Origin: Macrostomum lignano
Taxonomy: Eukaryota
Reading direction: 5' to 3'
Length of the DNA stretch: 64,000 nt
NCBI GenBank assembly: GCA_002269645.1
Contig: NIVC01000695.1
Location: forward strand, 124,001-188,000
Both the position numbers and the translations under genes were made by a program. Every line of letters starts with the position of its first letter. Positions within the stretch are counted from its first letter, which is position 1. The notes below the pieces were generated by a model that had not been told where the DNA came from, ran no database searches, and saw only the letters and a program-made list of their open reading frames with translations. Positions 14,095-54,040 of the stretch are shown here, piece after piece.

Positions 14095-14302
14095 TAGGTT
14101 AGGGCTAGGGGTAGGTTTAGACTAGGGTTTTAGGTTTTAGTATTAAGAAAGTAGTAGTAAGAAAACTACTATCAGAAACGAAAAAGCTGTCCAGTAAATC
14201 AAAGCATCCAACTTTACTTCTAGAGAACTGAGAAGCTTCCTCCTCTACTGAATAGTAGGCTTATTAGAATTTTATTCGAATTTTGACCCCCAAATCACTC
14301 AC

Positions 14303-14920
14303 CGTTCGATAATCATCCAATTCTGACTGCAGAGCCATGAGCTGCGCCCTCAGCGCGGCAATCTGTTTACTAGTCTTATCCTGATTAATGGACACCTTGT
14401 TCTTTATATTCCTAGCCCGATTGGCGTACTTGAGCGTGTTCAAAGTCTCCATGAAATCGCAATCGGATGGCGAGATGCAAGCAACCATAATTGTCCGACT
14501 GTTGCCACCCAGGGAGTCTTGCAAGAGTCTGGTGAGCTTTGAGTCTCGATAGGGCACGTGACAGCCTTTCTTAGTCCGATCGCCCAGCGCGCTGATGACA
14601 TTGCCCAGGGCTAGCAGACCGCAGTTAATACTGATGCCTTCCCGAGCTCGATCCCCGGTAGCTCCGGTTCGTTTCAACCTCTCCGAGCCGGCCAAATCTA
14701 CGAAATGGAATTTCGCTGTCAGAGTCTCGAACTCCATGGTCTGAGCCTCCGGATTGGCCACTGGTTCGACGCCGAATGGCGAATCTTCTTCGGACACTGC
14801 CAGGGGTCGTTTCTGACGAATGTGCAGAGTGAAGATGGCGTGCGACCGGCTTGACTGCGCGTTCATGTTCGTGCTGCCGGTGCTGCGGCACAGGGCGCCG
14901 TCTTGGAGGCAGCGCATCGT
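14303..14920 (-). CDS. KIF21: KIF21 exon 7 (switch I/II and end of the motor domain)
   Basis: [68 protein letters not shown]. Acceptor CCGCAG|ACG; donor ACG|GTGAGT. The [10 protein letters not shown] and GISINCGLL motifs are KIF21-diagnostic as I recall them. Confidence 0.96.
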
Positions 14921-35450: not shown

Positions 35451-35884
35451 CAGCCTGCTTGACTTCTGGTTCATTGTTAATAAGTTGCTTTGCTTTTTGT
35501 TTGTAGATATTTGGTAATTATTGAAACTATAATTTTGTGTTTTTTCTGTCTGGCAATGAAAGTGTGTTAATCTAATTTAAGTTCGTGTTTCAGCGAAGGA
35601 ATTGTGCAATAATTTAATATTCATATTTCTATTATGGTACTGTAGTATTTGTATAAACAATGCTATTATATAACTGTCAATCTAGTCATGCAAGCCTACT
35701 AATTGTTATTTAATATGTGCAATTAATTTTATGTAAAATTATTGATATTATGCAATTCAGTTAGTGCAATTTGTTTTAATTGTTTCTTTTTTCAATGTTT
35801 CTTAGTGCAAATGTTGCAATGAAATTTAAATATATTATTTGGCTTGCTCAATGCGTTTTATTATTGTGATTTAAAGGCATTGGG

Positions 35885-36422
35885 TAGCTGAGGACCCGCT
35901 GAAGGAGCAGAGAGGGTGGCTGAGGACCCACTGAAGGATCAGAGAGGACGGCTGAGGACCCACCGAAGGATCAGAGAGGGTGGCTGAGGACCCACTGAAG
36001 GATCAGAGAGGACGGCTGAGGACCCACTGAAGGATCAGAGAGGGTGGCTGAGGATCCACTGAAGGATCAGAGAGGGTAGCTGAGGACCCACCGAAGGATC
36101 AGAGAGGGTGGCTGAGGACCCACTGAAGGATCAGAGAGGACGGCTGAGGACCCACTGAAGGATCAGAGAGGGTGGCTGAGGATCCACTGAAGGATCAGAG
36201 AGGGTGGCTGAGGATCCACTGAAGGATCAGAGAGGGTGGCTGAGGACCCACTGAAGGATCAAAGAGGGTGGCTGAGGATCCACTGAAGGATCAGAGAGGG
36301 TGGCTGAGGACCCACTGAAGGATCAGAGAGGGTGGCTGAGGATCCACTGAAGGATCAGAGAGGGTGGCTGAGGACCCACTGAAGGATCAGAGATGACTGA
36401 GGACCCGCTAAAAGGATCAGAG
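35885..36422. repeat. 32-bp minisatellite (GCTGAGGACCCACTGAAGGATCAGAGAGGGTG), ~16 copies, ending ~80 nt before the eRF1 ATG
   Basis: Visible array. Confidence 0.94.
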
Positions 36423-36500
36423 ACTGCGATTGATAGCCGAACATTCGAAGGTAAATACCCTCAACTATTCTATTGCATGTAGCAACAGCTTGTTGTTGTC

Positions 36501-36869
36501 ATGGCAACAGCACTGGCTGTCAATCAACCATCGGCTTTTTCAGCTGATTTTCGCAGCCAGGAACTGCAACAGCAGCAGCAATGGAAGCTGAAGCGACTCC
36601 TTCGCGCACTGGACGGAGTCCGTGGTCACAATGGCACCAGTCTGATCACCCTGCTGGTGCCGCCGCGGCACCCGTTGAGTCGGCCCGCCAAGCTGCTAGC
36701 TGAGGAGATTGGAGCAGCTGGGAACATTAAATCGCGTGCCAATCGACTGGCTGTGCTGTGGGCCCTGGCCTCGGTGCAGCAGCGTCTGAAGGTGTACAGT
36801 CGGGTGCCAGACAATGGCCTTGTGATCTTCTGTGGGACTATTGTCACGGAGGATGGGAAAGAGAAAAAG
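36501..36869 (+). CDS. ETF1: Divergent eukaryotic release factor 1, exon 1 (N domain: GTS, NIKS)
   Basis: [53 protein letters not shown]; AAG|GTTGGG. Confidence 0.93.
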
Positions 36870-36904
36870 GTTGGGTTAGAGTTCTTATTGATGTTAATAT
36901 ATGT

Positions 36905-36980
36905 AGCTCATATGTATCGATAATTTACGAAAGAAGCCGATATGTATCGATAATTTACGAAAGAAGCCGATATGTATCGA
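36905..36980. repeat. 29-30-bp minisatellite (AGCCGATATGTATCGATAATTTACGAAAGA); resumes at 51417-51716 on the far side of the Helitron-like array
   Basis: Joining 36980 to 51417 recreates the intact unit TATGTATCGA|TAATTTACG. Confidence 0.9.
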
Positions 36981-37960
36981 CAAGCTGTTGAAACCCGCGG
37001 ATTTTGAACCCGGGGAATTCCAATCCCCGGAACTACTTTTGCATGTATTCTGAAATCTAAGGTCATACACAAACAAAAACTTGTTAATAGTTAGTAGAAT
37101 AGAGGTAGACATAAAATGGACACATTCGTGTAAAATTAGGATTTGAAGCAAACATTGATATTGTTGGCTGGGTTACTTCACAGAATGTCAGGCAATGTCT
37201 GTCTGACTCTAAAACATGTATTGGCAAACTCTGGCCTCTCCCTGACTCTCACTATGTCCCTTGGATCCTTTAAAATTTCTATCGTCTCTTCAGTTTCCTC
37301 TCTTCTCTCTCGTCCCTCGTCTCTCCTCTCTCTTCTCTCCTCTCCTCTCTCATATCTTCCCTCATCTCTCTTCTCTTTCATCTCTCTTATCTCTTGTCTC
37401 TTCTCTCTTCTCTCCTCTCTCCTGTCTCCTCTCTACTTTTCGTTTTCTCTCTCCTCTCCTCTCTCCTCTCTACTCTTTCGTTTTCTCTCTCCTCTCCTCT
37501 CTCCTATCTTCTTTCGTATCTTCCCTCATCTCTCTTCTCTTTCATATCTCTTATCTTATCTCATCTCTTCCCTTTTCTTTTCTCTCTCCTCTCCTCTCTC
37601 CTCTCTACTTTTTCGTTTTCTCTCTTCTTCTCTCTCTCCTCTCTCCCCCTCTTCTCTCGTCTCTTCCTTCTCCTCTCTATTCTTTTCTCTCTTCTCTTAA
37701 CTCTCTCCTCTCTCTTCTCTCCTCTTTCCTCTCTCTCTCCTCTCTCCCCTCTTCTCTCGTCTCTTCTTTCACCTCTTTCCTCTCTCTCTTTCCTCTCATC
37801 TCTTTTCTTGTTTTATCTCTTCTCTCTCCCCTCGTCACTCGTCTCTTCCCTCACCTCTCTTCTCTCTTGTCTGCGTTTTTATCTCTCCTTTCTCTTCTTT
37901 TATCTTTTCTCTCTTATCTCTTCTCATTTCTCTCTGCTCTGCGCTCTCTCTCTCTCTCTG

Positions 37961-38050
<90 letters not shown>

Positions 38051-40720
38051 ATCTCTCCTCTCCCATCCCTCTTCTACTCTCTACTCTCTCCCCTCTTCAT
38101 TCTCCTATTTCCTCTTCTCTCTCCCTGTCTCTCCTCTCTCCTCTAGTCTCTGTAATCTCTTCTCTCTTATCTCTCCTCTGTTCTCTCTACTCTCCCATCT
38201 CTCGTCTGTTCACCCTCATCTCTGCTCTCTCATCTGTCATCTTTACTCTCTAATACGTTCTCTCACTTATCTCCTCTGTACTCTTCTCTTTCACCTCTTC
38301 TGACTCCTCTCTTTCCTTACTCCTCTCTTCTATACTCTCTCTCCTCTAATATCTTCTCTCATCTCTCTGCACTCTCCTCTCACCTTTTTCATCTCTTATC
38401 TTTACTCTCTCATCTCTCCTTTCATTTGTCTCATCTCTACAATCTCATCTCTCCTTTCTCCCCTCTTCTTACATCCCTCTCTTATCTCTATTATCTCTAT
38501 CTCTTCTCTTCTCACTCTTCTCTCCCCCTCTTATCTTCTCTCTTCTCTATCCTTTCTACTCTCTCCTCTCCTCTTGACCCTCTGTCATCTTCTTTCTGCT
38601 CTCTCATCTCTACTCTTTTCTCACTCTTCTCTACTCTCCTCTCATCGATCCTCTGTCTCATCTCTCCCCTCTTCTCACCTTTACTCTTTCCTCTCCCTCC
38701 TTTCTCCCCTCCTCTCGCTTCTTCCTCCCTTCTTCTCTGCTCTCTCCTCACCACTTGTCTCTTCTCTTATCTTCCATGTTTTCTCTTATCCCCGTCCCGC
38801 CTCTCCTCTCTTCTAATAGTCTATTCCTTCTCCTTTCCACTCTCATCTGGCCCGCACATAAGCTGGATTCTTTATCTGGCTTTTGAAGTAAAATCTGCCG
38901 ATCACTGCTTCGAAAGCCAGTTTGTGGGACGTACTACTCTCATCGTTATTCTCATGCTTTGATCACGTCATCTTTCTTGCCAATTTGCAGCCCTGAAAGG
39001 AATTTGTGTATCTTCAGCTCCACTGCAGTCTGCATCAGTCTAACAACCAAGGAAATACGCATTTCTTAGGCCATTTAAATTTCAAAGTACTTTTAAGAGA
39101 AACTTAAAATTTCCATGGTGTGCCTAATTTAGTAGGGTTGTATTTCATTGCATCGCATCGCCTTTTCATAAATCTTTCGCTTTTACAAACCATGCTGGAT
39201 TCCCTCGATTTGCCAATTGCCATCCACTGTTAAACTGCTGCAGAGTTTGCCAATACAGAGGGGAGGGCAGTGGTTAGAATTTCTCACTAAACTGTTATGG
39301 CTAAACGTAGCCTCTCCACTCTCGGGGTGCAGAGAAGGCTATAAATAAAGTTATTCCAAAACACTGTACATTTGCTATGTACATTCAGTCCTATCGCCTG
39401 ACCCTTCGTCTGGCTCTGGGGGAATGAGTGAGTGAGTAGCAAAAACAACAGAAAAAGGAGACAAACTTCACATGCTTACAGTTTCTTTTTCGGTTGAGTT
39501 ACAGAGTTGAAACTTTACATTTAGACAGAGAATGGGTCAATGAAGAATTGTGTCAAGTTTGAAGTTAATCGCTTTACGTGGAGCAAACTTATGGCAGCCG
39601 AAAGTTAGTCCATTTTGAAACCCTTTTACACATCTGGGCCGCCCAGATCGGGAAAGAGAGGCAGGCGGGCGGAGGTTGGGGTGGCTGTCTCGCTGACAAA
39701 AAACAGCCCAACTTTAAAAGTGCACAGCGCCGTTCAGGATTAACTTTGAGAATCGAAATTTTACACGATTGTGTCAAAATAGTTGAAAATTGTCTGTGTC
39801 AAATTTGAAGAGAATCGGTAGAAGTGGAGCGGCGCTATGGAGGATTAAGTGAAAAAATCGCGCATTTTGAGCAGTTTTTTGTACTTTTAGGTAGGAAGAC
39901 TCAAATTTAGGAAATTAAAAGGTAGCCTAAGACATTCTCCGTAGTAAGTTTAGGGTGGGTGTAAAGTTTGGTGTAATTTGGTTGAGCGGTTTGGGAGTCC
40001 ATAGCGATCAAAATTGTCCACACACAGACACACAGACAGACAGAGTTTTGATTTTTATATTTAGAGACAAGCTGTTGAAACCCGCGGATTTTGAACCCGG
40101 GGAATTCCAATACCCGGAACTACGTTTGCATGTATTCTGAAATCTAAGGCCATACACAAACAAAAACTTGTTAATAGTTAGTAGGATAGAGGTAGACATA
40201 AAATGGAGCACATTCGTGTAAAATTAGGGTTTGAGACATTGTTGGCTGGGGTACTGCGCAGAATGTCAGGCAATGTCTGTCTGACTCTAAAACATATTGC
40301 TAAACTCTGGTCTCTCACTGACTCTCCCTACGTCCCTTGGATCCTTTAAAATTTCTATCGTCTCTTTGTTTCCTCTCATCTCTCTCGTCCCTCGTCTCTC
40401 CTCTTTCTTCTCTCCTCTCTTCTCTCGTATCTTCCCTCATCTCTCTTCTCTTTTATCTCTCTTATCTCATCTCTTGTCTCTTCTTTTCTCTAGTCTCCTC
40501 TCTCCTCTCTACTTTTTCGTTTTCTCTCTCCTCTCTCCCCCTCTCCTCTCTCCTCTCACCCCCTCTTCTCTCTGATCTTCATTCTCCTTTCTATTCTTTT
40601 CTCTCTTCTCTTAACTCTCTCCTCTACTCTCTCATCTCTCCCCTCTTCTCTCGTCTTTGCTCTCTCATCTTTCCTTTCTCTTATCTTTTCTCTCTTATCT
40701 CTTCTCATTTCTCTCTGCCC

Positions 40721-40793
<73 letters not shown>

Positions 40794-43691
40794 GTCTTTC
40801 TCTCTTATCTCTCCTCCTCTCTCTACTCTCTCCCCTCTCCATTCTCCTCTTTCCTCTCCTCTCTCGACTCTCCTCACTCACTTCTCTACCTTTGTCTCTC
40901 CTCTCTCCTCTCGTCTCTGTAACCTCTCCTCTGTTCTCTCTACTCTCCCATCTTTTATCTGTTCACTCTCGTCTCTGCTCTCTCATCCCCCTCTTTAATC
41001 TGGCATCTCTGTCTTATATGTTCTCTCACCTCTCTCCTCTGTACTCTTTTCTTTCCCCTCTTGACTTTTCACTTTCCTTTCTCCTTTCTTCTTTTCTCTT
41101 CTCTTCCCTTTTCTATACTCTGTCTCCCTCTCTTCTCTCACTCCACTCTCCTCTCTCCGTTATCTCTCATCTCTCATTTCTCATCTCTCCTTCCACCTCT
41201 CTCATCTCTACAACCTTAGAGATGTAGAGATGTATCTTTATCTCTTCTCTCTTCCCTTTACTCTCTCATCTCTTCTTTCACCTGTTTCCTCTCTGCTCTC
41301 CTCTCTGCTGTCTCCTCTCTCCTGTCATCTGCAGCTCTCTGCTCTCTCATCTCGCTTTTCCTCTCTCCCCTCTTCTCCCCCTCTCTCTCATCATCCTCAC
41401 CCCTCATCCTCCTATTATCTTTTATCTTTTCTTTTATCCCCTCTGTCGCCTCTCCTCTCTTCGAATCGTCTATTCCTTCTTCTTTCCACTTTCATCTGCC
41501 CCTCAGCTATGAGCTGGAATGCTGGATTCTTTATCTGGCCTTTGAGGTAAAAGTCTGCCCATCCCTGCTTGGAAAGCCAGTTTGTGGGACGTAGTACTCT
41601 CATCGTTGTTCTCATGCTTTGATCACGTCATCTTTCTTGCCAATTTGCAGCCCTGAAAGGAATTTGTGTATCTTCAGCTCCACTGCAGTCTGCATCAGTC
41701 TAACAACCAAGGAAATACGCATTTCTTAGGAGGCCATTTAAAATTTACACACTACCTTTAAAAGAAACCTAAAATTTCCATGGTGTGCCTAATTTAGTAG
41801 GGTTGTATTTCATTGCATCGCATCGCCTTTTCATAAATCTTTCGCTTTTACAAACCATGCTGGATTCCCTCGATTTGCCAATTGCCATCCACTGTTAAAC
41901 TGCTGCAGAGTTTGCCAATACAGAGGGGAGGGCAGTGGTTAGAATTTCTCACTAAACTGTTATGGCTAAACGTAGCCTCTCCACTCTCGGGGTGCAGAGA
42001 AGGCTATAAATAAAGTTATTCCAAAACACTGTACATTCGCTATGTACATTGAGCCCTATCGCCTGACCCTTCGTCTGGCTCTGGGGGAATGAGTGAGTGA
42101 GTGGCACAAACAATCGAAAAAGCAAACTTCACATGCTTACAGTTTCTGTTCTGATTGAGTTAGAGAGTTGAAACTTTACATTTAGATAGAGAATGGGTCA
42201 ATGAAGAATTGTGTCAAATTTGAAGTCAATCGCTTTACGTGGAGCAAACTTATGGCAGCTGAAAGTTAGTCAATTTTGAAACCCTTTTACACATCTGGGC
42301 CCAGATCGGGATCGGGAAAGAGAGGCAGGCGGGCGGAGGTTGGGGTGGTTGCTACGCTGAAAAAAACAGCCTAAATTTAAAAGTGCACAGCACCACTCAG
42401 GATTAACTTTGAGACTCGAAATTTTACACAATTGTGCCAAAATAGTTAAAGATTATCTGTGTCAAATTTGAAAAGAATCGGTAGAAGTGGAGCGGCGCTA
42501 TGGAGGATTAAGTGAAAAAATCGCGCATTTTGAGCAGTTTTTTGTACTTTTAGGTAGGAAGACTCAAATTTAGGAAATTAAAAGGTAGCCTAAGACATTC
42601 TCCGTAGTAAGTTTAGGGTGGGTGTAAAGTTTGGTGTAATTTGGTTGAGCGGTTTGGGAGTCCATAGCGATCAAAATTGTCCACACACAGACACACAGAC
42701 AGACAGAGTTTTGATTTTTATATGTAGAGACAAGCTGTTGAAACCCGCGGATTTTGAACCCGGGGAATTCCAATCCCCGGAACTACTTTTGCATGTATTC
42801 TGAAATCTAAGGTCATACACAAACAAAAACTTGTTAATAGTTAGTAGAATAGAGGTAGACATAAAATGGACACATTCGTGTAAAATTAGGATTTGAAGCA
42901 AACATTGATATTGTTGGCTGGGTTACTTCACAGAATGTCAGGCAATGTCTGTCTGACTCTAAAACATGTATTGGCAAACTCTGGCCTCTCCCTGACTCTC
43001 ACTATGTCCCTTGGATCCTTTAAAATTTCTATCGTCTCTTCAGTTTCCTCTCTTCTCTCTCGTCCCTCGTCTCTCCTCTCTCTTCTCTCCTCTCCTCTCT
43101 CATATCTTCCCTCATCTCTCTTCTCTTTCATCTCTCTTATCTCTTGTCTCTTCTCTCTTCTCTCCTCTCTCCTGTCTCCTCTCTACTTTTCGTTTTCTCT
43201 CTCCTCTCCTCTCTCCTCTCTACTCTTTCGTTTTCTCTCTCCTCTCCTCTCTCCTATCTTCTTTCGTATCTTCCCTCATCTCTCTTCTCTTTCATATCTC
43301 TTATCTTATCTCATCTCTTCCCTTTTCTTTTCTCTCTCCTCTCCTCTCTCCTCTCTACTTTTTCGTTTTCTCTCTCTTCTCTCTCTCCTCTCTCCCCTCT
43401 TCTCTTGTCTCTTCCTTCTCCTCTCTATTCTTTTCTCTCTTCTCTTAACTCTCTCCTCTCTCTTCTCTCCTCTTTCCTCTCTCTCTCCTCTCTCCCCTCT
43501 TCTCTCGTCTCTTCTTTCACCTCTTTCCTCTCTCTCTTTCCTCTCATCTCTTTTCTTGTTTTATCTCTTCTCTCTCCCCTCGTCACCTCTCTTCTCTCTT
43601 GTCTGCGTTTTATCTCTCCTTTCTCTTCTTTTATCTTTTCTCTCTTATCTCTTCTCATTTCTCTCTGCTCTGCGCTCTCTCTCTCTCTCTG

Positions 43692-43783
<92 letters not shown>

Positions 43784-46451
43784 ATCTCTCCTCTCCCATC
43801 CCTCTTCTACTCTCTACTCTCTCCCCTCTTCATTCTCCTATTTCCTCTTCTCTCTCCCTGTCTCTCCTCTCTCCTCTAGTCTCTGTAATCTCTTCTCTCT
43901 TATCTCTCCTCTGTTCTCTCTACTCTCCCATCTCTCGTCTGTTCACCCTCATCTCTGCTCTCTCATCTGTCATCTTTACTCTCTAATACGTTCTCTCACT
44001 TATCTCCTCTGTACTCTTCTCTTTCACCTCTTCTGACTCCTCTCTTTCCTTACTCCTCTCTTCTATACTCTCTCTCCTCTAATATCTTCTCTCATCTCTC
44101 TGCACTCTCCTCTCACCTTTTTCATCTCTTATCTTTACTCTCTCATCTCTCCTTTCATTTGTCTCATCTCTACAATCTCATCTCTCCTTTCTCCCCTCTT
44201 CTTACATCCCTCTCTTATCTCTATTATCTCTATCTCTTCTCTTCTCACTCTTCTCTCCCCCTCTTATCTTCTCTCTTCTCTATCCTTTCTACTCTCTCCT
44301 CTCCTCTTGACCCTCTGTCATCTTCTTTCTGCTCTCTCATCTCTACTCTTTTCTCACTCTTCTCTACTCTCCTCTCATCGATCCTCTGTCTCATCTCTCC
44401 CCTCTTCTCACCTTTACTCTTTCCTCTCCCTCCTTTCTCCCCTCCTCTCGCTTCTTCCTCCCTTCTTCTCTGCTCTCTCCTCACCACTTGTCTCTTCTCT
44501 TATCTTCCATGTTTTCTCTTATCCCCGTCCCGCCTCTCCTCTCTTCTAATAGTCTATTCCTTCTCCTTTCCACTCTCATCTGGCCCGCACATAAGCTGGA
44601 TTCTTTATCTGGCTTTTGAAGTAAAAGTCTGCCGATCACTGCTTCGAAAGCCAGTTTGTGGGACGTACTACTCTCATCGTTATTCTCATGCTTTGATCAC
44701 GTCATCTTTCTTGCCAATTTGCAGCCCTGAAAGGAATTTGTGTATCTTCAGCTCCACTGCAGTCTGCATCAGTCTAACAACCAAGGAAATACGCATTTCT
44801 TAGGCCATTTAAATTTCAAAGTACTTTTAAGAGAAACTTAAAATTTCCATGGTGTGCCTAATTTAGTAGGGTTGTATTTCATTGCATCGCATCACCTTTT
44901 CATAAATATTTCGCTTTTACAAACCATTCTGGATTGCCTCGATTTGCCAATTGCCATCCACTGTTAAACTGCTGCAGAGTTTGCCAATACAGAGGGGAGG
45001 GCAGTGGTTAGAATTTCTCACTAAACTGTTATGGCTAAACGTAGCCTCTCCACTCTCGGGGTGCAGAGAAGGCTATAAATAAAGTTATTCCAAAACACTG
45101 TACATTTGCTATGTACATTCAGTCCTATCGCCTGACCCTTCGTCTGGCTCTGGGGGAATGAGTTGGATGAGCGGCAAACAACAGAAAAAGCAGACAAACT
45201 TCACATGCTTACAGTTTCTTTTTCGGTTGAGTTACAGAGTTGAAACTTTACATTTAGACAGAGAATGGGTCAATGAAGAATTGTGTCAAGTTTGAAGTTA
45301 ATCGCTTTACGTGGAGCAAACTTATGGCAGCCGAAAGTTAGTCCATTTTGAAACCCTTTTACACATCTGGGCCGCCCAGATCGGGAAAGAGAGGCAGGCG
45401 GGCGGAGGTTGGGGTGGCTGTCTCGCTGACAAAAAACAGCCCAACTTTAAAAGTGCACAGCGCCGTTCAGGATTAACTTTGAGAATCGAAATTTTACACG
45501 ATTGTGTCAAAATAGTTGAAAATTGTCTGTGTCAAATTGAAGAGAATCGGTAGAAGTGGAGCGGCGCTATGGAGGATTAAGTGAAAAAATCGCGCATTTT
45601 GAGCAGTTTTTTGTACTTTTAGGTAGGAGACTCAAATTTAGGAAATTAAAAGGTAGCCTAAGACATTCTCCGTAGTAAGTTTAGGGTGGGTGTAAAGTTT
45701 GGTGTAATTTGGTTGAGCGGTTTGGGAGTCCATAGCGATCAAAATTGTCCACACACAGACACACAGACAGACAGAGTTTTGATTTTATATTTAGAGACAA
45801 GCTGTTGAAACCCGCGGATTTTGAACCCGGGGAATTCCAATACCCGGAACTACGTTTGCATGTATTCTGAAATCTAAGGCCATACACAAACAAAAACTTG
45901 TTAATAGTTAGTAGGATAGAGGTAGACATAAAATGGAGCACATTCGTGTTAAAATTAGGGTTTGAGACATTGTTGGCTGGGGTACTGCGCAGAATGTCAG
46001 GCAATGTCTGTCTGACTCTAAAACATATTGCTAAACTCTGGTCTCTCACTGACTCTCCCTACGTCCCTTGGATCCTTTAAAAATTTCTATCGTCTCTTTG
46101 TTTCCTCTCATCTCTCTCGTCCCTCGTCTCTCCTCTCTCCTCTCTCCCCTCTTCTCTCGTATCTTCCCTCATCTCTCTTCTCTTTTATCTCTCTTATCTC
46201 ATCTCTTGTCTCTTCTTTTCTCTAGTCTCCTCTCTCCTCTCTACTTTTTCGTTTTCTCTCTCCTCTCTCCCCTCTCCTCTCTCCTCTCACCCCCTCTTTC
46301 TCTCTGATCTTCATTCTCCTTTCTATTCTTTTCTCTCTTCTCTTAACTCTCTCCTCTACTCTCTCATCTCTCCCCTCTTCTCTCGTCTTTGCTCTCTCAT
46401 CTTTCCTTTCTCTTATCTTTTCTCTCTTATCTCTTCTCATTTCTCTCTGCC

Positions 46452-46522
<71 letters not shown>

Positions 46523-49422
46523 CTTCTCTGTCTTTCTCTCTTATCTCTCCTCCTCTCTCTACTCTCTCCCTCTCCATTCTCCTCTTTCCTCTCCTCTCTC
46601 GACTCTCCTCACTCACTTCTCTACCTTTGTCTCTCCTCTCTCCTCTCGTCTCTGTAACCTCTCCTCTGTTCTCTCTACTCTCCCATCTTTTATCTGTTCA
46701 CTCTCGTCTCTGCTCTCTCATCCCCTCTTTAATCTGGCATCTCTGTCTTATATGTTCTCTCACCTCTCTCCTCTGTACTCTTTTCTTTCCCCTCTTGACT
46801 TTTCACTTTCCTTTCTCCTTTCTTCTTTTCTCTTCTCTTCCCTTTTCTATACTCTGTCTCCCTCTCTTCTCTCACTCCACTCTCCTCTCTCCGTTATCTC
46901 TCATCTCTCATTTCTCATCTCTCCTTCCACCTCTCTCATCTCTACAACCTTAGAGATGTAGAGATGTATCTTTATCTCTTCTCTCTTCCCTTTACTCTCT
47001 CATCTCTTCTTTCACCTGTTTCCTCTCTGCTCTCCTCTCTGCTGTCTCCTCTCTCCTCTCATCTGCAGCTCTCTGCTCTCTCATCTCGCTTTTCCTCTCT
47101 CCCCTCTTCTCCCCCTCTCTCTCATCATCCTCACCCCCTCATCCCTCCTATTATCTTTTATCTTTTCTTTTATCCCCTCTGTCGCCTCTCCTCTCTTCGA
47201 ATCGTCTATTCCTTCTTCTTTCCACTTTCATCTGCCCCTCAGCTATGAGCTGGAATGCTGGATTCTTTATCTGGCCTTTGAGGTAAAAGTCTGCCCATCC
47301 CTGCTTGGAAAGCCAGTTTGTGGGACGTAGTACTCTCATCGTTGTTCTCATGCTTTGATCACGTCATCTTTCTTGCCAATTTGCAGCCCTGAAAGGAATT
47401 TGTGTATCTTCAGCTCCACTGCAGTCTGCATCAGTCTAACAACCAAGGAAATACGCATTCTTAGGAGGCCATTTAAAATTTACACACTACCTTTAAAAGA
47501 AACCTAAAATTTCCATGGTGTGCCTAATTTAGTAGGGTTGTATTGCATTGCATCGCATCGCTTTTCATAAATCTTTCGCTTTTACAAACCATGCTGGATT
47601 CCCTCGATTTGCCAATTGCCATCCACTGTTAAACTGCTGCAGAGTTTGCCAATACAGAGGGGAGGGCAGTGGTTAGAATTTCTCACTAAACTGTTATGGC
47701 TAAACGTAGCCTCTCCACTCTCGGGGTGCAGAGAAGGCTATAAATAAAGTTATTCCAAAACACTGTACATTCGCTATGTACATTGAGCCCTATCGCCTGA
47801 CCCTTCGTCTGGCTCTGGGGAATGAGTGAGTGAGTGGCACAAACAATCGAAAAAGCAAACTTCACATGCTTACAGTTTCTGTTCTGATTGAGTTAGAGAG
47901 TTGAAACTTTACATTTAGATAGAGAATGGGTCAATGAAGAATTGTGTCAAATTTGAAGTCAATCGCTTTACGTGGAGCAAACTTATGGCAGCTGAAAGTT
48001 AGTCAATTTTGAAACCCTTTTACACATCTGGCCCAGATCGGGATCGGGAAAGAGAGGCAGGCGGGCGGAGGTTGGGGTGGTTGCTACGCTGAAAAAAACA
48101 GCCTAAATTTAAAAGTGCACAGCACCACTCAGGATTAACTTTGAGACTCGAAATTTTACACAATTGTGCCAAAATAGTTAAAGATTATCTGTGTCAAATT
48201 TGAAAGAATCGGTAGAAGTGGAGCGGCGCTATGGAGGATTAAGTGAAAAAATCGCGCATTTTGAGCAGTTTTTTGTACTTTTAGGTAGGAAGACTCAAAT
48301 TTAGGAAATTAAAAGGTAGCCTAAGACATTCTCCGTAGTAAGTTTAGGGTGGGTGTAAAGTTTGGTGTAATTTGGTTGAGCGGTTTGGGAGTCCATAGCG
48401 ATCAAAATTGTCCACACACAGACACACAGACAGACAGAGTTTTGATTTTTATATGTAGAGACAAGCTGTTGAAACCCGCGGATTTTGAACCCGGGGAATT
48501 CCAATCCCGGAACTACTTTTGCATGTATTCTGAAATCTAAGGTCATACACAAACAAAAACTTGTTAATAGTTAGTAGAATAGAGGTAGACATAAAATGGA
48601 CACATTCGTGTAAAATTAGGATTTAAAGCAAACATTGATATTGTTGGCTGGGTTACTTCACAGAATGTCAGGCAATGTCTGTCTGACTCTAAAACATGTA
48701 TTGGCAAACTCTGGCCTCTCCCTGACTCTCCCTATGTCCCTTGGATCCTTTAAAATTTCTATCGTCTCTTCTGTTTCCTCTCTTCTCTCTCGTCCCTCGT
48801 CTCTCCTCTCTCTTCTCTCCTCTCTTCTCTCATATCTTCCCTCATCTCTCTTCTCTTTCATCTCTCTTATCTCTTGTCTCTTCTCTCTTCTCTCCTCTCT
48901 CCTGTCTCCTCTCTACTTTTCGTTTTCTCTCTCCTCTCCTCTCTCCTCTCTACTCTTTCGTTTTCTCTCTCCTCTCCTCTCTCCTATCTTCTTTCGTATC
49001 TTCCCTCATCTCTCTTCTCTTTCATATCTCTTATCTTATCTCATCTCTTCCCTTTTCTTTTCTCTCTCCTCTCCTCTCCTCCTCTCTACTTTTTCGTTTT
49101 CTCTCTTCTTCTCTCTCTCCTCTCTCCCCCTCTTCTCTCGTCTCTTCCTTCTCCTCTCTATTCTTTTCTCTCTTCTCTTAACTCTCTCTCTCTCTCTTCT
49201 CTCCTCTTTCCTCTCTCTCTCCTCTCTCCCCTCTTCTCTCTCTTCTTTCACCTCTTTCCTCTCTCTCTTTCCTCTCATCTCTTTTCTTGTTTTATCTCTT
49301 CTCTCTCCCCTCGTCACTCGTCTCTTCCCTCACCTCTCTTCTCTCTTGTCTGCGTTTTTATCTCTCCTTTCTCTTCTTTTATCTTTTCTCTCTTATCTCT
49401 TCTCATTTCTCTCTGCTCTGCG

Positions 49423-49509
<87 letters not shown>

Positions 49510-51416
49510 TCTCCCTCCCATCCCTCTTCTACTCTCTACTCTCCCATCTCTCGTCTGTTCACCCTCATCTCTGCTCTCTCATCTGTCATCTTTACTCTCT
49601 AATACGTTCTCTCACTTATCTCCTCTGTACTCTTCTCTTTCACCTCTTCTGACTCCTCTCTTTCCTTACTCCTCTCTTCTATACTCTCTCTCCTCTAATA
49701 TCTTCTCTCATCTCTCTGCACTCTCCTCTCACCTTTTTCATCTCTTATCTTTACTCTCTCATCTCTCCTTTCATTTGTCTCATCTCTACAATCTCATCTC
49801 TCCTTTCTCCCCTCTTCTTACATCCCTCTCTTATCTCTATTATCTCTATCTCTTCTCTTCTCACTCTTCTCTCCCCCTCTTATCTTCTCTCTTCTCTATC
49901 CTTTCTACTCTCTCCTCTCCTCTTGACCCTCTGTCATCTTCTTTCTGCTCTCTCATCTCTACTCTTTTCTCACTCTTCTCTACTCTCCTCTCATCGATCC
50001 TCTGTCTCATCTCTCCCCTCTTCTCACCTTTACTCTTTCCTCTCCCTCCTTTCTCCCCTCCTCTCGCTTCTTCCTCCCTTCTTCTCTGCTCTCTCCTCAC
50101 CACTTGTCTCTTCTCTTATCTTCCATGTTTTCTCTTATCCCCGTCCCGCCTCTCCTCTCTTCTAATAGTCTATTCCTTCTCCTTTCCACTCTCATCTGGC
50201 CCGCACATAAGCTGGATTCTTTATCTGGCTTTTGAAGTAAAAGTCTGCCGATCACTGCTTCGAAAGCCAGTTTGTGGGACGTACTACTCTCATCGTTATT
50301 CTCATGCTTTGATCACGTCATCTTTCTTGCCAATTTGCAGCCCTGAAAGGAATTTGTGTATCTTCAGCTCCACTGCAGTCTGCATCAGTCTAACAACCAA
50401 GGAAATACGCATTTCTTAGGCCATTTAAATTTCAAAGTACTTTTAAGAGAAACTTAAAATTTCCATGGTGTGCCTAATTTAGTAGGGTTGTATTTCATTG
50501 CATCGCATCACCTTTTCATAAATATTTCGCTTTTACAAACCATTCTGGATTGCCTCGATTTGCCAATTGCCATCCACTGTTAAACTGCTGCAGAGTTTGC
50601 CAATACAGAGGGGAGGGCAGTGGTTAGAATTTCTCACTAAACTGTTATGGCTAAACGTAGCCTCTCCACTCTCGGGGTGCAGAGAAGGCTATAAATAAAG
50701 TTATTCCAAAACACTGTACATTTGCTATGTACATTCAGTCCTATCGCCTGACCCTTCGTCTGGCTCTGGGGGAATGAGTTGGATGAGCGGCAAACAACAG
50801 AAAAAGCAGACAAACTTCACATGCTTACAGTTTCTTTTTCGGTTGAGTTACAGAGTTGAAACTTTACATTTAGACAGAGAATGGGTCAATGAAGAATTGT
50901 GTCAAGTTTGAAGTTAATCGCTTTACGTGGAGCAAACTTATGGCAGCCGAAAGTTAGTCCATTTTGAAACCCTTTTACACATCTGGGCCGCCCAGATCGG
51001 GAAAGAGAGGCAGGCGGGCGGAGGTTGGGGTGGCTGTCTCGCTGACAAAAAACAGCCCAACTTTAAAAGTGCACAGCGCCGTTCAGGATTAACTTTGAGA
51101 ATTGAAATTTTACACGATTGTGTCAAAATAGTTGAAAATTGTCTGTGTCAAATTTGAAGAGAATCGGTAGAAGTGGAGCGGCGCTATGGAGGATTAAGTG
51201 AAAAAATCGCGCATTTTGAGCAGTTTTTTGTACTTTTAGGTAGGAAGACTCAAATTTAGGAAATTAAAAGGTAGCCTAAGACATTCTCCGTAGTAAGTTT
51301 AGGGTGGGTGTAAAGTTTGGTGTAATTTGGTTGAGCGGTTTGGGAGTCCATAGCGATCAAAATTGTCCACACACAGACACACAGACAGACAGAGTTTTGA
51401 TTTTTATATGTAGAGA
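36981..51416 (-). mobile_element. Head-to-tail array of five non-autonomous Helitron-like units: A 36981-40067, B 40068-42730, A 42731-45797, B 45798-48461, A 48462-51416
   Basis: Each unit on the minus strand starts TCTCTA(C/A)ATATAAAAATCAAAAC plus a GTCT microsatellite and ends CCCGG...CCGCGGG...ACAGCTTG. Every internal junction is TAGAGA|CAAG on the plus strand; the outer flanks give A|TC...CTTG|T. Interiors are CT-rich. Confidence 0.85.
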
Positions 51417-51770
51417 TAATTTACGTAAGTAGCCGATATGTATCAAAAAATTTCTTAAATAGCCGATATGTATCGATAATTTACGAAAGAAGCCGATATG
51501 TATCGATTAAACACTGAAGTTGCCGATATGTATTAATTAAACACTGAAGTAGCCGGTATGTATCGATTAAACACTGAAGTAGCCGATATGTATCGATTAA
51601 ACACTGAAGTAGCCGATATGTATCGATTAAACACTGAAGTAGCCGATATGTATCGATTAAACACTGAAGTAGCCGGTATGTATCGATTAAACACTGAAGT
51701 AGCCGATATGTATCGAAAGTGAATTTATTAGAAAATAAGAAATCGCGACCCCCTTCCCCCACATACCCAG

Positions 51771-52199
51771 GTAACAATAGACTTGGAGCCGTGCAAACCT
51801 GTCCAATCGCCCATCTACCTGTGCGACAGCCGGTTCCACACGGAGGCGCTGCAGTCGATGCTGGAAACTGACGAGCGCAGGTTCGGCTTCATCGTGCTGG
51901 ACGGCTCTGGCGCCCTCTTCGCTGTGCTGAGCGGCTCCGAGCGCCGGGTGCTGCACCGAATGTCGGTCGAGTTGCCCAGAAAACACGGCCGAGGCGGACA
52001 GTCCGCCGTCCGGTTTGCCCGTATCCGATTGGAGAAGCGGCATAATTATTTGCGCAAAGTGGCCGAACTCGCGTCCGGACTGTTTCTGGAGCCGGACAGC
52101 GGCCGGCCGGCCGTGGACGGACTTGTTTTAGCCGGGTCGGCCGACTTCAAAGTTGAATTGCAGCAGGGCGGCCTGCTGGATGCCAGACTCGCTGGCAAG
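51771..52199 (+). CDS. ETF1: eRF1 exon 2 (YxCxxxF, GGQ)
   Basis: ACCCAG|GTA; [10 protein letters not shown]...[39 protein letters not shown]; AAG|GTTGGT. Confidence 0.95.
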
Positions 52200-52209
52200 G
52201 TTGGTTACT

Positions 52210-52780
52210 GGGGCAGAAATATGAAGAGAGGGGCGGAAATATGAAGTGAGGGGCGGAAATATGAAAAGAGCGGCGGAGTGATGTTTAGAGAGGGGCGGAA
52301 AGATAATTAGAGGGGGCGGAAAGATAATTAGAGGGGGCGGAAAGATAATTAGAGGGGGCGGAAAGATAATTAGAGGGGGCGGAAAGATAGTTAGAGGGGG
52401 CGGAAAGATAAAGAGAGGGGGGCGGAAAGATGAAGAGAGGGGCGGAAAGATGAAGAGAGGGGGCGGAAAGATAATTAGAGGGGCGGAAAGATAATTAAGT
52501 TGGGTGGAAAGAAGAAGAGAGGGTGGCGGAAAGATAAAGAAAGGGGCGGAAAGATGAAGAGAGGGTGGCGGAAAGATAAAGAAAGGGGCGGAAAGATGAA
52601 GAGAGGGTGGCGGAAAGATGAACAGAGGGCGGAAAGATAAAGAGAGGGGCGGAAAGATGAGGAGAGGGGCGGAAAGATGAGGAGAGGGGCGGAAAGATGA
52701 AGAGAGGGGCGGAAAGATGAAGAGAGGGGCGGAAAGATGAAGAGAGGGGCGGAAAGATGAAGAGAGGGGCGGAAAGAAAA
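52210..52780. repeat. ~20-22-bp GC-box minisatellite (GGGGCGGAAAGATGAAGAGA), eRF1 intron 2
   Basis: About 25 visible copies. Confidence 0.92.
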
Positions 52781-52877
52781 CGATTAAAGATTAGGATATA
52801 TCAAAGAGGACTGTAGGAGTGCAGCAAACAATACACCAGCATATAAATACAAATGCATATCTAATCTACATGTCCAG

Positions 52878-53387
52878 ACACTCCAGGTGGTGGACATAGC
52901 CTACGGCGGTGAGGTCGGCCTCAACCAGGCCATTGAGCTGGCCTCAGACTGTTTAACTGGCCTGGCCTATCTAGAAGAAAAGCGCTGCCTAGCCAGACTA
53001 TTCGAAGAATTGGGTCACGGCCGGCAGCAGCTGGTTTGCTACGGTGTTGGGCAGACTGTGGCCGCACTAGAATCTGGCGCGGTGGACACTGTGCTAGCCT
53101 GGGAGGAGCTGCCCTACGACTGCGTGCTGACCGCCAGCCGGCAGCTGAAGCTGATTCCTAGGCAAGCCTGTCGGAGTGCTGCTGGCGGTCAGCATGGAGA
53201 TGGTGTAGAGGTCACCGACTGCGGCCTGGATGAGCCGAGGCCGCTGATCGACTGGCTGGCAGATGCGGGCTGCCCGGCGGCCGGGGCTCAGCTGCGCGTG
53301 CTGGCCTGCCGCAGCCCCGAGGGAGTGCAGTTTGCCAACGGCTTCGGCGGCCTCGCTGGCCTGCTGCGGTACCCGCTGGACTGGGAG
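52878..53387 (+). CDS. ETF1: eRF1 exon 3 (C domain)
   Basis: GTCCAG|ACA (TLQVVDIAYGG keeps register with VLKLVDISYGG; alternative acceptor at 52887); EGVQFANGFGGLAGLLRY; GAG|GTGAGG. Confidence 0.92.
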
Positions 53388-53399
53388 GTGAGGGAGCTG

Positions 53400-53660
53400 C
53401 GTGTGTGTCTGTGTGTGTCAGTGTGTGTCTACTGTTCCTGCCTGCTGTGTCTGTCTGTGTGTGCCTGCTTGTCTACTGTTCCTGCCTGCTGTGTCTGTGT
53501 CTGCCTGCTGTGTCTGTCTGTGTCTATCTGTGTCTGCCTGCTGTGTCTGTCTGTGTCTGCCTGCTGTGTCTATCTGTGTCTGCCTGCTGTGTCTGTCTGT
53601 GTGTCTGTGTGTCTGTCTGTGTGTCTGCTGTGTCTGTCTGTGTGTGTCTTCTGTTTGCTG
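53400..53660. repeat. (GTCT/GTGT)-rich simple repeat, eRF1 intron 3
   Basis: Low-complexity TGTCTGCCTGCTGTG units. Confidence 0.88.
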
Positions 53661-53938
53661 TTTTTGAAGAAGCAACATATGTCTGCCTTCTGTGTGTCTA
53701 TTTGTTTTTCTCAGTGTCTTTTTAGCATCAGAATCGCAAAATACCATGGGCATCCTGTGTCCGAATTTAGGTTGCCAAATTAAAAACCTGAATCCCAGCA
53801 GGCATCGGTCAAAAATTTCAAAACCATACTCTGCAGTCTTCAGACTTTATGCTTACAGATTACTCAAAATGTAGATTCTGACTCTCTTCAATCATTTATC
53901 AACAGTCCCATCTCTCGCCGTTTCTTATCCCAATCCAG

Positions 53939-54040
53939 GATCCGGAGTCGCTCCAGTCTGGTGCACAAACCGACGCTGAAGCGGTCGCGGATGAGGATGC
54001 AAGCGACGTCTACGACTGCTTCGATCTAGGCGACTACTAG
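53939..54040 (+). CDS. ETF1: eRF1 exon 4 (acidic tail, stop); total CDS 1410 nt, 469 aa
   Basis: ATCCAG|GAT; DPESLQSGAQTDAEAVADEDASDVYDCFDLGDY*, matching the canonical FFDLDDY end; TAG at 54038-54040. Confidence 0.88.
   Translation, partial: DPESLQSGAQTDAEAVADEDASDVYDCFDLGDY

Follow-up and report, generated by a model that had tools for sequence, protein, structure and literature searches.

Could an animal maintain a second, strongly altered eRF1 beside its housekeeping copy, and would such a protein still terminate translation? This question is raised by Mlig006332.g2 (BOX15_Mlig006332g2), a gene encoding a divergent eRF1 paralog in a 64,000-nucleotide stretch of contig NIVC01000695.1 of the flatworm Macrostomum lignano (below, the window means this whole stretch). 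eRF1 is among the most conserved animal proteins and, to our knowledge, natural variation in its decoding motifs is known almost only from protists with reassigned stop codons. Our analysis points to a lineage-specific paralog that is maintained by selection and probably catalytically competent, with a remodeled decoding shell and a divergent partner-binding domain, a reading to which we give a probability of roughly 70%. The likeliest interpretation, we infer, is a sub- or neofunctionalized termination factor that would act beside the housekeeping eRF1.

Two kinds of eRF1 gene in M. lignano

The window holds an intact eRF1-family gene at positions 36501-54040 of the forward strand. Splicing and translation of the window DNA gave four exons and an open reading frame (ORF) of 469 amino acids, and all three introns have GT..AG borders and are in phase 0. 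The exons, the ORF, and the kept and changed motifs with their coordinates, all listed in an earlier note on this DNA, were thereby reproduced. Over the 23.5 kb compared, the window DNA agrees with NIVC01000695.1 (L012) at every base, and M. lignano proteins were the top database matches of the translated gene. The protein matched the Pfam domains eRF1_1, eRF1_2 and eRF1_3 with scores of 66, 119 and 61 bits, each exceeding its curated cut-off. Residues 25-438 matched eRF1 chains in the PDB (E-values of about 1e-130), and the match to Pelota in the same database was weak (E = 6.8e-4). Between W15 and F131, 44 of 117 positions differ from human eRF1, exactly the count given earlier, and the same alignment also placed V48P, S123P and N129S in the paralog. 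The human reference sequence had the expected 437 amino acids and agreed with the PDB alignment.

A profile of flatworm eRF1s found a canonical eRF1 in the same assembly (P0172; BOX15_Mlig030584, 447 amino acids). It carries ARGNGTS, TASNIKS, S70, YLCDNKF and GGQ, and is 83% identical to both human and oyster eRF1. Three loci encode this identical protein, with just six to eight synonymous differences between them. The presence of Mlig030584 bears out the proposal that the window gene is a second eRF1 beside a canonical copy, and excludes that it is the sole eRF1 of its lineage.

The paralog itself has two further syntenic loci, on NIVC01001522.1 (Mlig016649.g2) and NIVC01001600.1 (Mlig026666.g1), and at all three it lies downstream of the same bHLH-PAS gene. 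The assembly therefore contains three canonical and three divergent copies, as expected for the partly duplicated M. lignano genome. The coding sequence of Mlig016649.g2 is 100% identical to that of Mlig006332.g2 at the nucleotide level, although the introns differ and NIVC01001522.1 lacks 14.4 kb of intron 1. Mlig026666.g1 differs from Mlig006332.g2 by a 3-nt deletion, 12 substitutions (roughly half of them nonsynonymous) and a pair of compensating indels in exon 2 (L011; homologous to window positions ~52100-52150). These indels, a 4-nt insertion (CGGC) and a 4-nt deletion (GACT) 47 nt apart, keep the frame and replace 15 residues, an invariant segment among them. The variant is probably real, since it recurs in a UniProt model from the independent ML2 assembly (P0002).

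In the databases, the M. lignano paralogs are labeled either as hypothetical protein or, automatically, as eukaryotic peptide chain release factor subunit 1. The GenBank annotation of M. lignano was built from a genome-guided RNA-seq transcriptome (PMC5730564), and the paralog gene models therefore have transcript support. Also in favor of transcription, its ortholog (see below) is present as an intronless mRNA contig. Among the texts and supplements of M. lignano papers, a search for the paralog gene identifiers, ETF1 and 'release factor' returned only eRF3, in one supplement.

Origin of the paralog and selection on it

To place the duplication, we compared intron positions. In the canonical M. 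lignano gene there are exactly three introns, each in phase 0, and they follow ...GKEKK, ...RLQSK and ...LDFQ. The three introns of the paralog lie at exactly homologous codons and in the same phase. None of the 10 introns of Crassostrea eRF1 or the 7 of Schistosoma eRF1 occupies any of these three positions; several other intron positions are common to these two genes. Because the three phase-0 introns are found in both M. lignano genes and are missing in oyster and Schistosoma, the duplication can be placed within the Macrostomum lineage. Judged by gene structure, this shows the paralog to be a DNA-level duplicate of an already restructured, four-exon Macrostomum-lineage eRF1 gene. On the restructuring itself, the intron positions at the three canonical loci (L006, L007 and L008) all differ from those common to oyster and schistosome, and two of the canonical introns are 5 and 10 codons off conserved introns. 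Intron loss plus either sliding or gain in the M. lignano lineage is suggested.

The paralog has evolved much faster than its canonical counterpart. A Tajima relative-rate count, for which the outgroup was oyster, human, Lingula or a sea anemone, assigned about 147 unique changes to the paralog and about 13 to the canonical protein (chi2 ~112), and the acceleration after duplication is more than 10-fold. The paralog is only about 50-53% identical to every canonical eRF1, including that of M. lignano itself. Its least conserved part is the C domain, with about 30-33% identity to human eRF1.

One ortholog was found outside M. lignano. This protein (P0004) is the product of a 486-amino-acid ORF on a Logan transcript contig of 1578 nt that has no introns (L001; run SRR28338165), and is 69% identical to the M. 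lignano paralog. The two have many derived features in common, including the His insertion, AAGNIKS, W73, EPCKP, SP(I/V)YLCD(S/A)RF, the insertions ETDERR and EP(D/E)SGR, and the terminal YDCFDLGDY, which is similar to canonical MYDNFDLDDY. P0004 has Ser70, and Ala70 is confined to the M. lignano copies, where all three have it. P0004 also carries G181A beside GGQ.

These derived motifs are rare. Among 397 eRF1-family sequences sampled, TASNIKS was present in 279 and ARGNGTS in 241 sequences other than the paralogs, while AAGNIKS and RGHNGTS were found in the Macrostomum paralogs only. In the 181 canonical animal eRF1s of the sample, T58 and S60 are invariant, and both TASNIKS and ARG-NGTS without an inserted residue are essentially invariant. 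The heptapeptide TASNIKS has been described as universally conserved (PMC4381064); the paralog departs from it, with AAGNIKS in all M. lignano paralog copies and in the ortholog. Counting as animal-invariant those sites with at most one exception in the 181 sequences (n = 228), we found 69 altered in the M. lignano paralog and 59 altered in both orthologs, mostly to one common residue. Within the C domain, 22 of 50 invariant sites are altered in both. A search of 50%-identity representatives revealed no further members of this clade beyond M. lignano's own fragments, although at ~51-53% identity to canonical eRF1 relatives may hide inside the canonical cluster of such a set.

Selection was estimated from nonsynonymous (dN) and synonymous (dS) divergence between the M. 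lignano paralog and the ortholog mRNA, using the Nei-Gojobori method. The approximate dN/dS (omega) of the whole protein was 0.17 (dN 0.254, dS 1.50). It was lowest in the N (decoding) domain at 0.058 (dN 0.097, dS 1.66), followed by the M domain at 0.11 (dN 0.183, dS 1.66) and the C domain at 0.42 (dN 0.420, dS 1.00). As a canonical comparison we used a 415-amino-acid Logan fragment from the cluster of P0172 (L013; Macrostomum-like transcriptome SRR30276804), as the homolog search returned no other full-length Macrostomum canonical eRF1 protein. Against the M. lignano canonical gene, this fragment gave a dN of 0.045 at a dS of 1.28, compared with the dN of 0.254 in the paralog pair. Nonsynonymous evolution of the paralog is about 5 to 10 times faster than that of canonical eRF1. 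These comparisons show a stem burst of replacement after the duplication, which then gave way to purifying selection, with the remodeled decoding domain under the tightest constraint. Such a pattern is a signature of neofunctionalization or specialization, rather than of decay.

The decoding domain and possible functions

We then asked what the remodeling spared. All residues with a known part in stop-codon contact or in catalysis are kept, namely G31-T32-S33, E55, N61-I62-K63, R65, N67, R68, L69, V71 and K109, as are Y125, C127 and F131 of YxCxxxF and the catalytic GGQ. The changes lie in the shell of the pocket. They comprise the His added to the GTS loop, where it borders the GTS/P1 pocket, AAGNIKS, W73 on the helix that bears position 70, and the replacements of TSL122-124 by SPI or SPV and of NK129-130 by SR or AR. 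The latter two flank YxCxxxF, in regions where engineered swaps alter stop-codon specificity. Nuclear magnetic resonance of the eRF1 mutants S33A and R65A indicates that R28 and G29 change conformation together with the GTS/P1 pocket.

Because all known stop-codon-contacting and catalytic residues are kept, entry into the ribosomal A site and peptide release are most likely retained. The paralog would then most likely enter the A site at stop codons and trigger peptidyl-tRNA hydrolysis, with the remodeled shell altering its efficiency, its preference for particular stop codons or contexts, or its use of partners. A change of partner use may also involve the fastest-evolving part of the protein, the C domain, through which eRF1 binds eRF3 and ABCE1; here it has about 30% identity to human eRF1. 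Sequence does not reveal in which direction specificity may have shifted.

Ala70 offers one specific alternative, that of a Euplotes-type factor that prefers UAR codons (UAA and UAG) and leaks at UGA, so that UGA readthrough would be regulated wherever the paralog replaces or competes with canonical eRF1. All M. lignano copies carry A70, and the inserted His borders the GTS/P1 pocket, which reads G2. In human eRF1, S70A lowered UGA efficiency 2.4-fold without eRF3, and only 1.3-fold with eRF3-GTP (PMC3025575); elsewhere, the mutant retained 42% of UGA activity, which eRF3 restored (PMC3632111). In yeast in vivo, UGA readthrough rose about 8-fold (PMC4381064). The double mutant S70A/G73S was more UAR-restricted, with UGA efficiency down 4.3-fold (PMC3025575), and position 73 is altered here too, although to Trp. 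Conversely, S33, the partner of S70, is retained, and W73, AAG and the inserted His could act in any direction. Since P0004 keeps Ser70, A70 would be a recent M. lignano change over an older, conserved remodeling, and hence is not the defining feature of the paralog clade. We therefore regard this alternative as unlikely. The earlier note had put a Euplotes-type S70A at the core of its mechanism, which the Ser70 of the ortholog and the modest published effects once eRF3 is present speak against. Its interpretation survives in part: the broader proposal of a specialized second release factor is supported, the gene being a second eRF1 under selection and not a pseudogene, whereas the Ala70-based, UGA-leaky mechanism is weak and partly contradicted by the ortholog.

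The Ala70 of the UAR-only Euplotes eRF1 (PMC3025575) recurs in the M. lignano paralog copies, and, as in variant-code ciliate eRF1s, the substitutions of the paralog cluster at TASNIKS, in helix 65-80 and in the flanks of YxCxxxF. In contrast, position 73 of the paralog is Trp and not Ser, the ortholog does not share Ala70, and kinship is at the family level only. The host also retains a canonical, omnipotent-type eRF1 with S70 and TASNIKS. No sign of a non-standard code in the host was seen, and none was sought. In no tested sense is the paralog a Euplotes-type UAR-only factor.

Another alternative is that the paralog has departed from canonical termination altogether, either as a poorly catalytic competitor or regulator, which would sit on stop codons or titrate eRF3 or ABCE1, or as a rescue or quality-control factor with a different GTPase partner. 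This would fit the C domain, which is only ~30% identical to human eRF1, has the highest omega (0.42) and is altered at 22 of 50 invariant sites in both orthologs, and it would fit G181A beside GGQ in the ortholog. A protein that no longer decodes would not be expected to have its N domain as the most constrained part (omega 0.058) and all stop-codon-contacting and catalytic residues kept, and the conserved terminal YDxFDLxDY also argues against it. We consider such a role quite doubtful. Dom34/Pelota is an eRF1-family paralog with a non-termination task, but it is without the NIKS and GGQ that are both present in the M. lignano paralog. These motifs and the PDB E-values (6.8e-4 for Pelota, ~1e-130 for eRF1) indicate that the paralog is not a Pelota.

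That the gene is a decaying duplicate from recent M. lignano genome duplications is very improbable and already largely refuted. The M. lignano genome is highly redundant, the protein is extremely divergent and Mlig026666.g1 has a frameshifted segment, all of which decay would explain. Against this, the ORF is intact in two species at a saturated dS distance, the orthologs have derived residues in common, and two loci have 100% identical coding sequences despite differing introns. Neither would decay yield the dN/dS against the ortholog mRNA (0.17 overall, 0.06 in the N domain), which answers the concern of the earlier note that the copy might be decaying. A foreign or ancient origin, as a contaminant, by horizontal transfer or as an old eukaryotic paralog, is the least probable explanation of all: a neighbor-joining tree (426 sites, 200 bootstraps) gave the paralog clade a very long branch and placed it outside Metazoa, and the count of shared derived residues does not favor M. 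lignano canonical eRF1 over distant taxa, but long-branch attraction would yield the basal placement, the three intron positions and phases match the M. lignano canonical gene and not oyster or schistosome, and the three syntenic loci, all on long worm contigs and each beside the shared bHLH-PAS gene, exclude contamination and horizontal transfer. We thus rejected the placement outside animals, which the shared introns contradict, as long-branch attraction. The residue count was also set aside as evidence of origin, as the 6 of 34 rare residues shared with canonical M. lignano eRF1 are no better than the numbers for distant taxa and hence uninformative.

A selection-maintained termination factor beside the housekeeping eRF1 accordingly heads the readings considered here, and several observations weigh against it. 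Outside M. lignano there is a single ortholog (SRR28338165), and dS is saturated (pS ~0.65), which makes the omega values approximate. Constraint on the C domain is relaxed (omega 0.42), and eRF3 binding there is putative. The compensated frameshift of Mlig026666.g1 is a hint that this copy, at least, is less constrained, and it may be degenerating. Lastly, the AlphaFold2 model is of moderate quality, with a mean predicted local distance difference test (pLDDT) score of 67 and scores of 40-65 in the N domain, and gives no structural support for a remodeled pocket. Built from a 40-sequence alignment, this model was too weak to map the substitutions and was not used for inference.

A stronger form of this reading would have the paralog as a second class-1 release factor under purifying selection in an animal with the standard code, whose re-engineered pocket (the GTS-loop insertion, AAGNIKS, W73 and, in M. 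lignano, A70) reads the three stops or their contexts unequally. If expressed in certain cells or stages, such as the germline, it would reprogram termination and readthrough transcriptome-wide, possibly with a co-evolved C-domain partner. In this full form we think the scenario rather improbable.

How does the termination factor proposed here compare with known eRF1s? Like canonical eRF1 (ETF1/SUP45), the paralog has three domains, GTS, E55, NIKS, YxCxxxF, GGQ and an acidic C-terminal DY, and its intron positions are identical to those of the M. lignano canonical gene. It differs in being about 50% identical to human eRF1, compared with 83% for the worm canonical protein. Arabidopsis, with eRF1-1, -2 and -3, likewise has more than one eRF1 gene under the standard code. 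Plant eRF1 paralogs still resemble one another closely and retain TASNIKS, whereas the M. lignano paralog lost half its identity. Extra eRF1 copies have been documented in both ciliates and plants, including in-paralogs in Euplotes and Paramecium (PMC2613156). Closest in appearance is eRF1-2 of Tetrahymena thermophila, a long-branch extra copy beside a standard eRF1 that is basal in trees, probably through long-branch attraction (PMC2613156), as is the paralog. However, the ciliate copies occur in hosts with reassigned stops, whereas the paralog belongs to an animal, and its shared introns date its origin to the host lineage. Our literature search found no paper on these M. lignano genes or on any divergent animal paralog of eRF1.

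The locus amounts to a natural experiment, in which a duplicate changed dozens of invariant residues near the decoding site and was then frozen by selection, while the housekeeping copy remained unchanged. If its termination properties differ, the paralog would give an animal a genetically encoded means of modulating stop-codon readthrough, and would offer new sequence solutions for eRF1 engineering, both for nonsense suppression and for the incorporation of non-canonical amino acids. M. lignano is amenable to RNAi and transgenesis, which makes the question directly testable.

Gene structure and neighboring sequence

Features of the divergent eRF1 paralog, in window coordinates
Feature	Position	Strand	Description
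Exon 1	36501..36869	+	aa 1-123: N-terminal tail, most of the N (decoding) domain; last residues ...GKEKK, then GT donor
His43 (CAC 36627-36629)	36627..36641	+	inserted between human G29 and N30, before N-G-T-S
GTS loop	36633-36641	+	retained
E55	36705-36707	+	kept
AAGNIKS for TASNIKS (T58A, S60G)	36714..36734	+	NIKS kept at 36723-36734
A70 (GCT 36750-36752), W73 (TGG 36759-36761)	36750..36761	+	helix downstream of NIKS
Intron 1	36870..51770	+	14.9 kb; contains a 14.4-kb higher-order tandem array, 36970-51416
Exon 2	51771..52199	+	aa 124-266: end of N domain with YLCDSRF (51816-51836), most of M domain
GGQ	51993-52001	+	exon 2, M domain; context HGRGGQSA 51984-52007
Intron 2	52200..52877	+	mainly a 20/42-bp minisatellite (52210-52777)
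Exon 3	52878..53387	+	aa 267-436: end of M domain and C domain; alternative acceptor 52887
Intron 3	53388..53938	+	low-complexity, TG/TC-rich (53400-53650)
Exon 4	53939..54040	+	aa 437-469 and TAG: acidic tail, end YDCFDLGDY (FDLGDY-stop 54020-54040)

Exon 3 has two candidate acceptors, with AGs 9 nt apart (tgtccag|ACACTCCAG|GTG), and public gene models are split between them. Acceptor 52878 gives the protein of 469 amino acids, while 52887 gives 466 amino acids through the loss of TLQ. We preferred 52878, since it is used by the RNA-seq-based GenBank models PAA66883.1, PAA78303.1 and PAA65984.1, and the residues it regains align with VLK in canonical eRF1 and VLQ in the ortholog mRNA.

The introns are rich in repeats. 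The intron 1 array has a period of ~5.75 kb and ~2.5 copies that are 94-97% identical, and each copy consists of two related sub-units of ~2.9 kb (79-83% identical) with long CT-rich tracts. The entire array is missing from the sister locus on NIVC01001522.1, which is otherwise 98-99% identical, and its junction falls within TATGTATCGA, a motif of a tandem repeat with 30-bp units (36901-36980 and 51427-51716). The minisatellite of intron 2, with GGGGCGGAAAGATGAAGAGA in ~27 copies, makes up nearly the whole intron.

Upstream of the paralog and in the same orientation, the bHLH-PAS gene occupies window positions 29492-~34200 on the forward strand, with Pfam matches to HLH and PAS. Because the paralog is named '.g2' at two of the three loci, a transcriptional unit shared with this gene is possible, in which the paralog may be the downstream, trans-spliced gene. 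A tandem array of ~32-bp units (…GGATCAGAGAGGGTGGCTGAGGACCCACTGAA…) at 35880-36425 lies directly upstream of the 5' end of the paralog, and the motif TTATTGCATG(T/A)AG, close to the 5' untranslated region, is conserved in the ortholog mRNA. Elsewhere in the window, two exon-sized ORFs on the reverse strand are parts of other genes, one with a urocanase N-terminal domain (761-1681; Pfam E = 2e-50) and one with a kinesin motor domain (14264-14917; Pfam E = 1e-56).

Two further candidates surfaced in the search for canonical copies and were rejected. P0015, which like the paralog has YLRKVAEL, was discarded as a Macrostomum canonical copy, being intronless and on a compact metagenomic contig. P0013, among the top-scoring canonical matches, was discarded as a worm eRF1, its gene being intronless. 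It belongs, with P0010, P0020 and their kin, to a large group of near-identical canonical eRF1s of 438 amino acids (…ISRGAKMLADEFG…MEYEPDEDFYDDDY) that occurs in ENA/Logan assemblies only. The P0013 locus (L005), the one inspected in this group, is an intronless gene on a 1.5-Mb contig.

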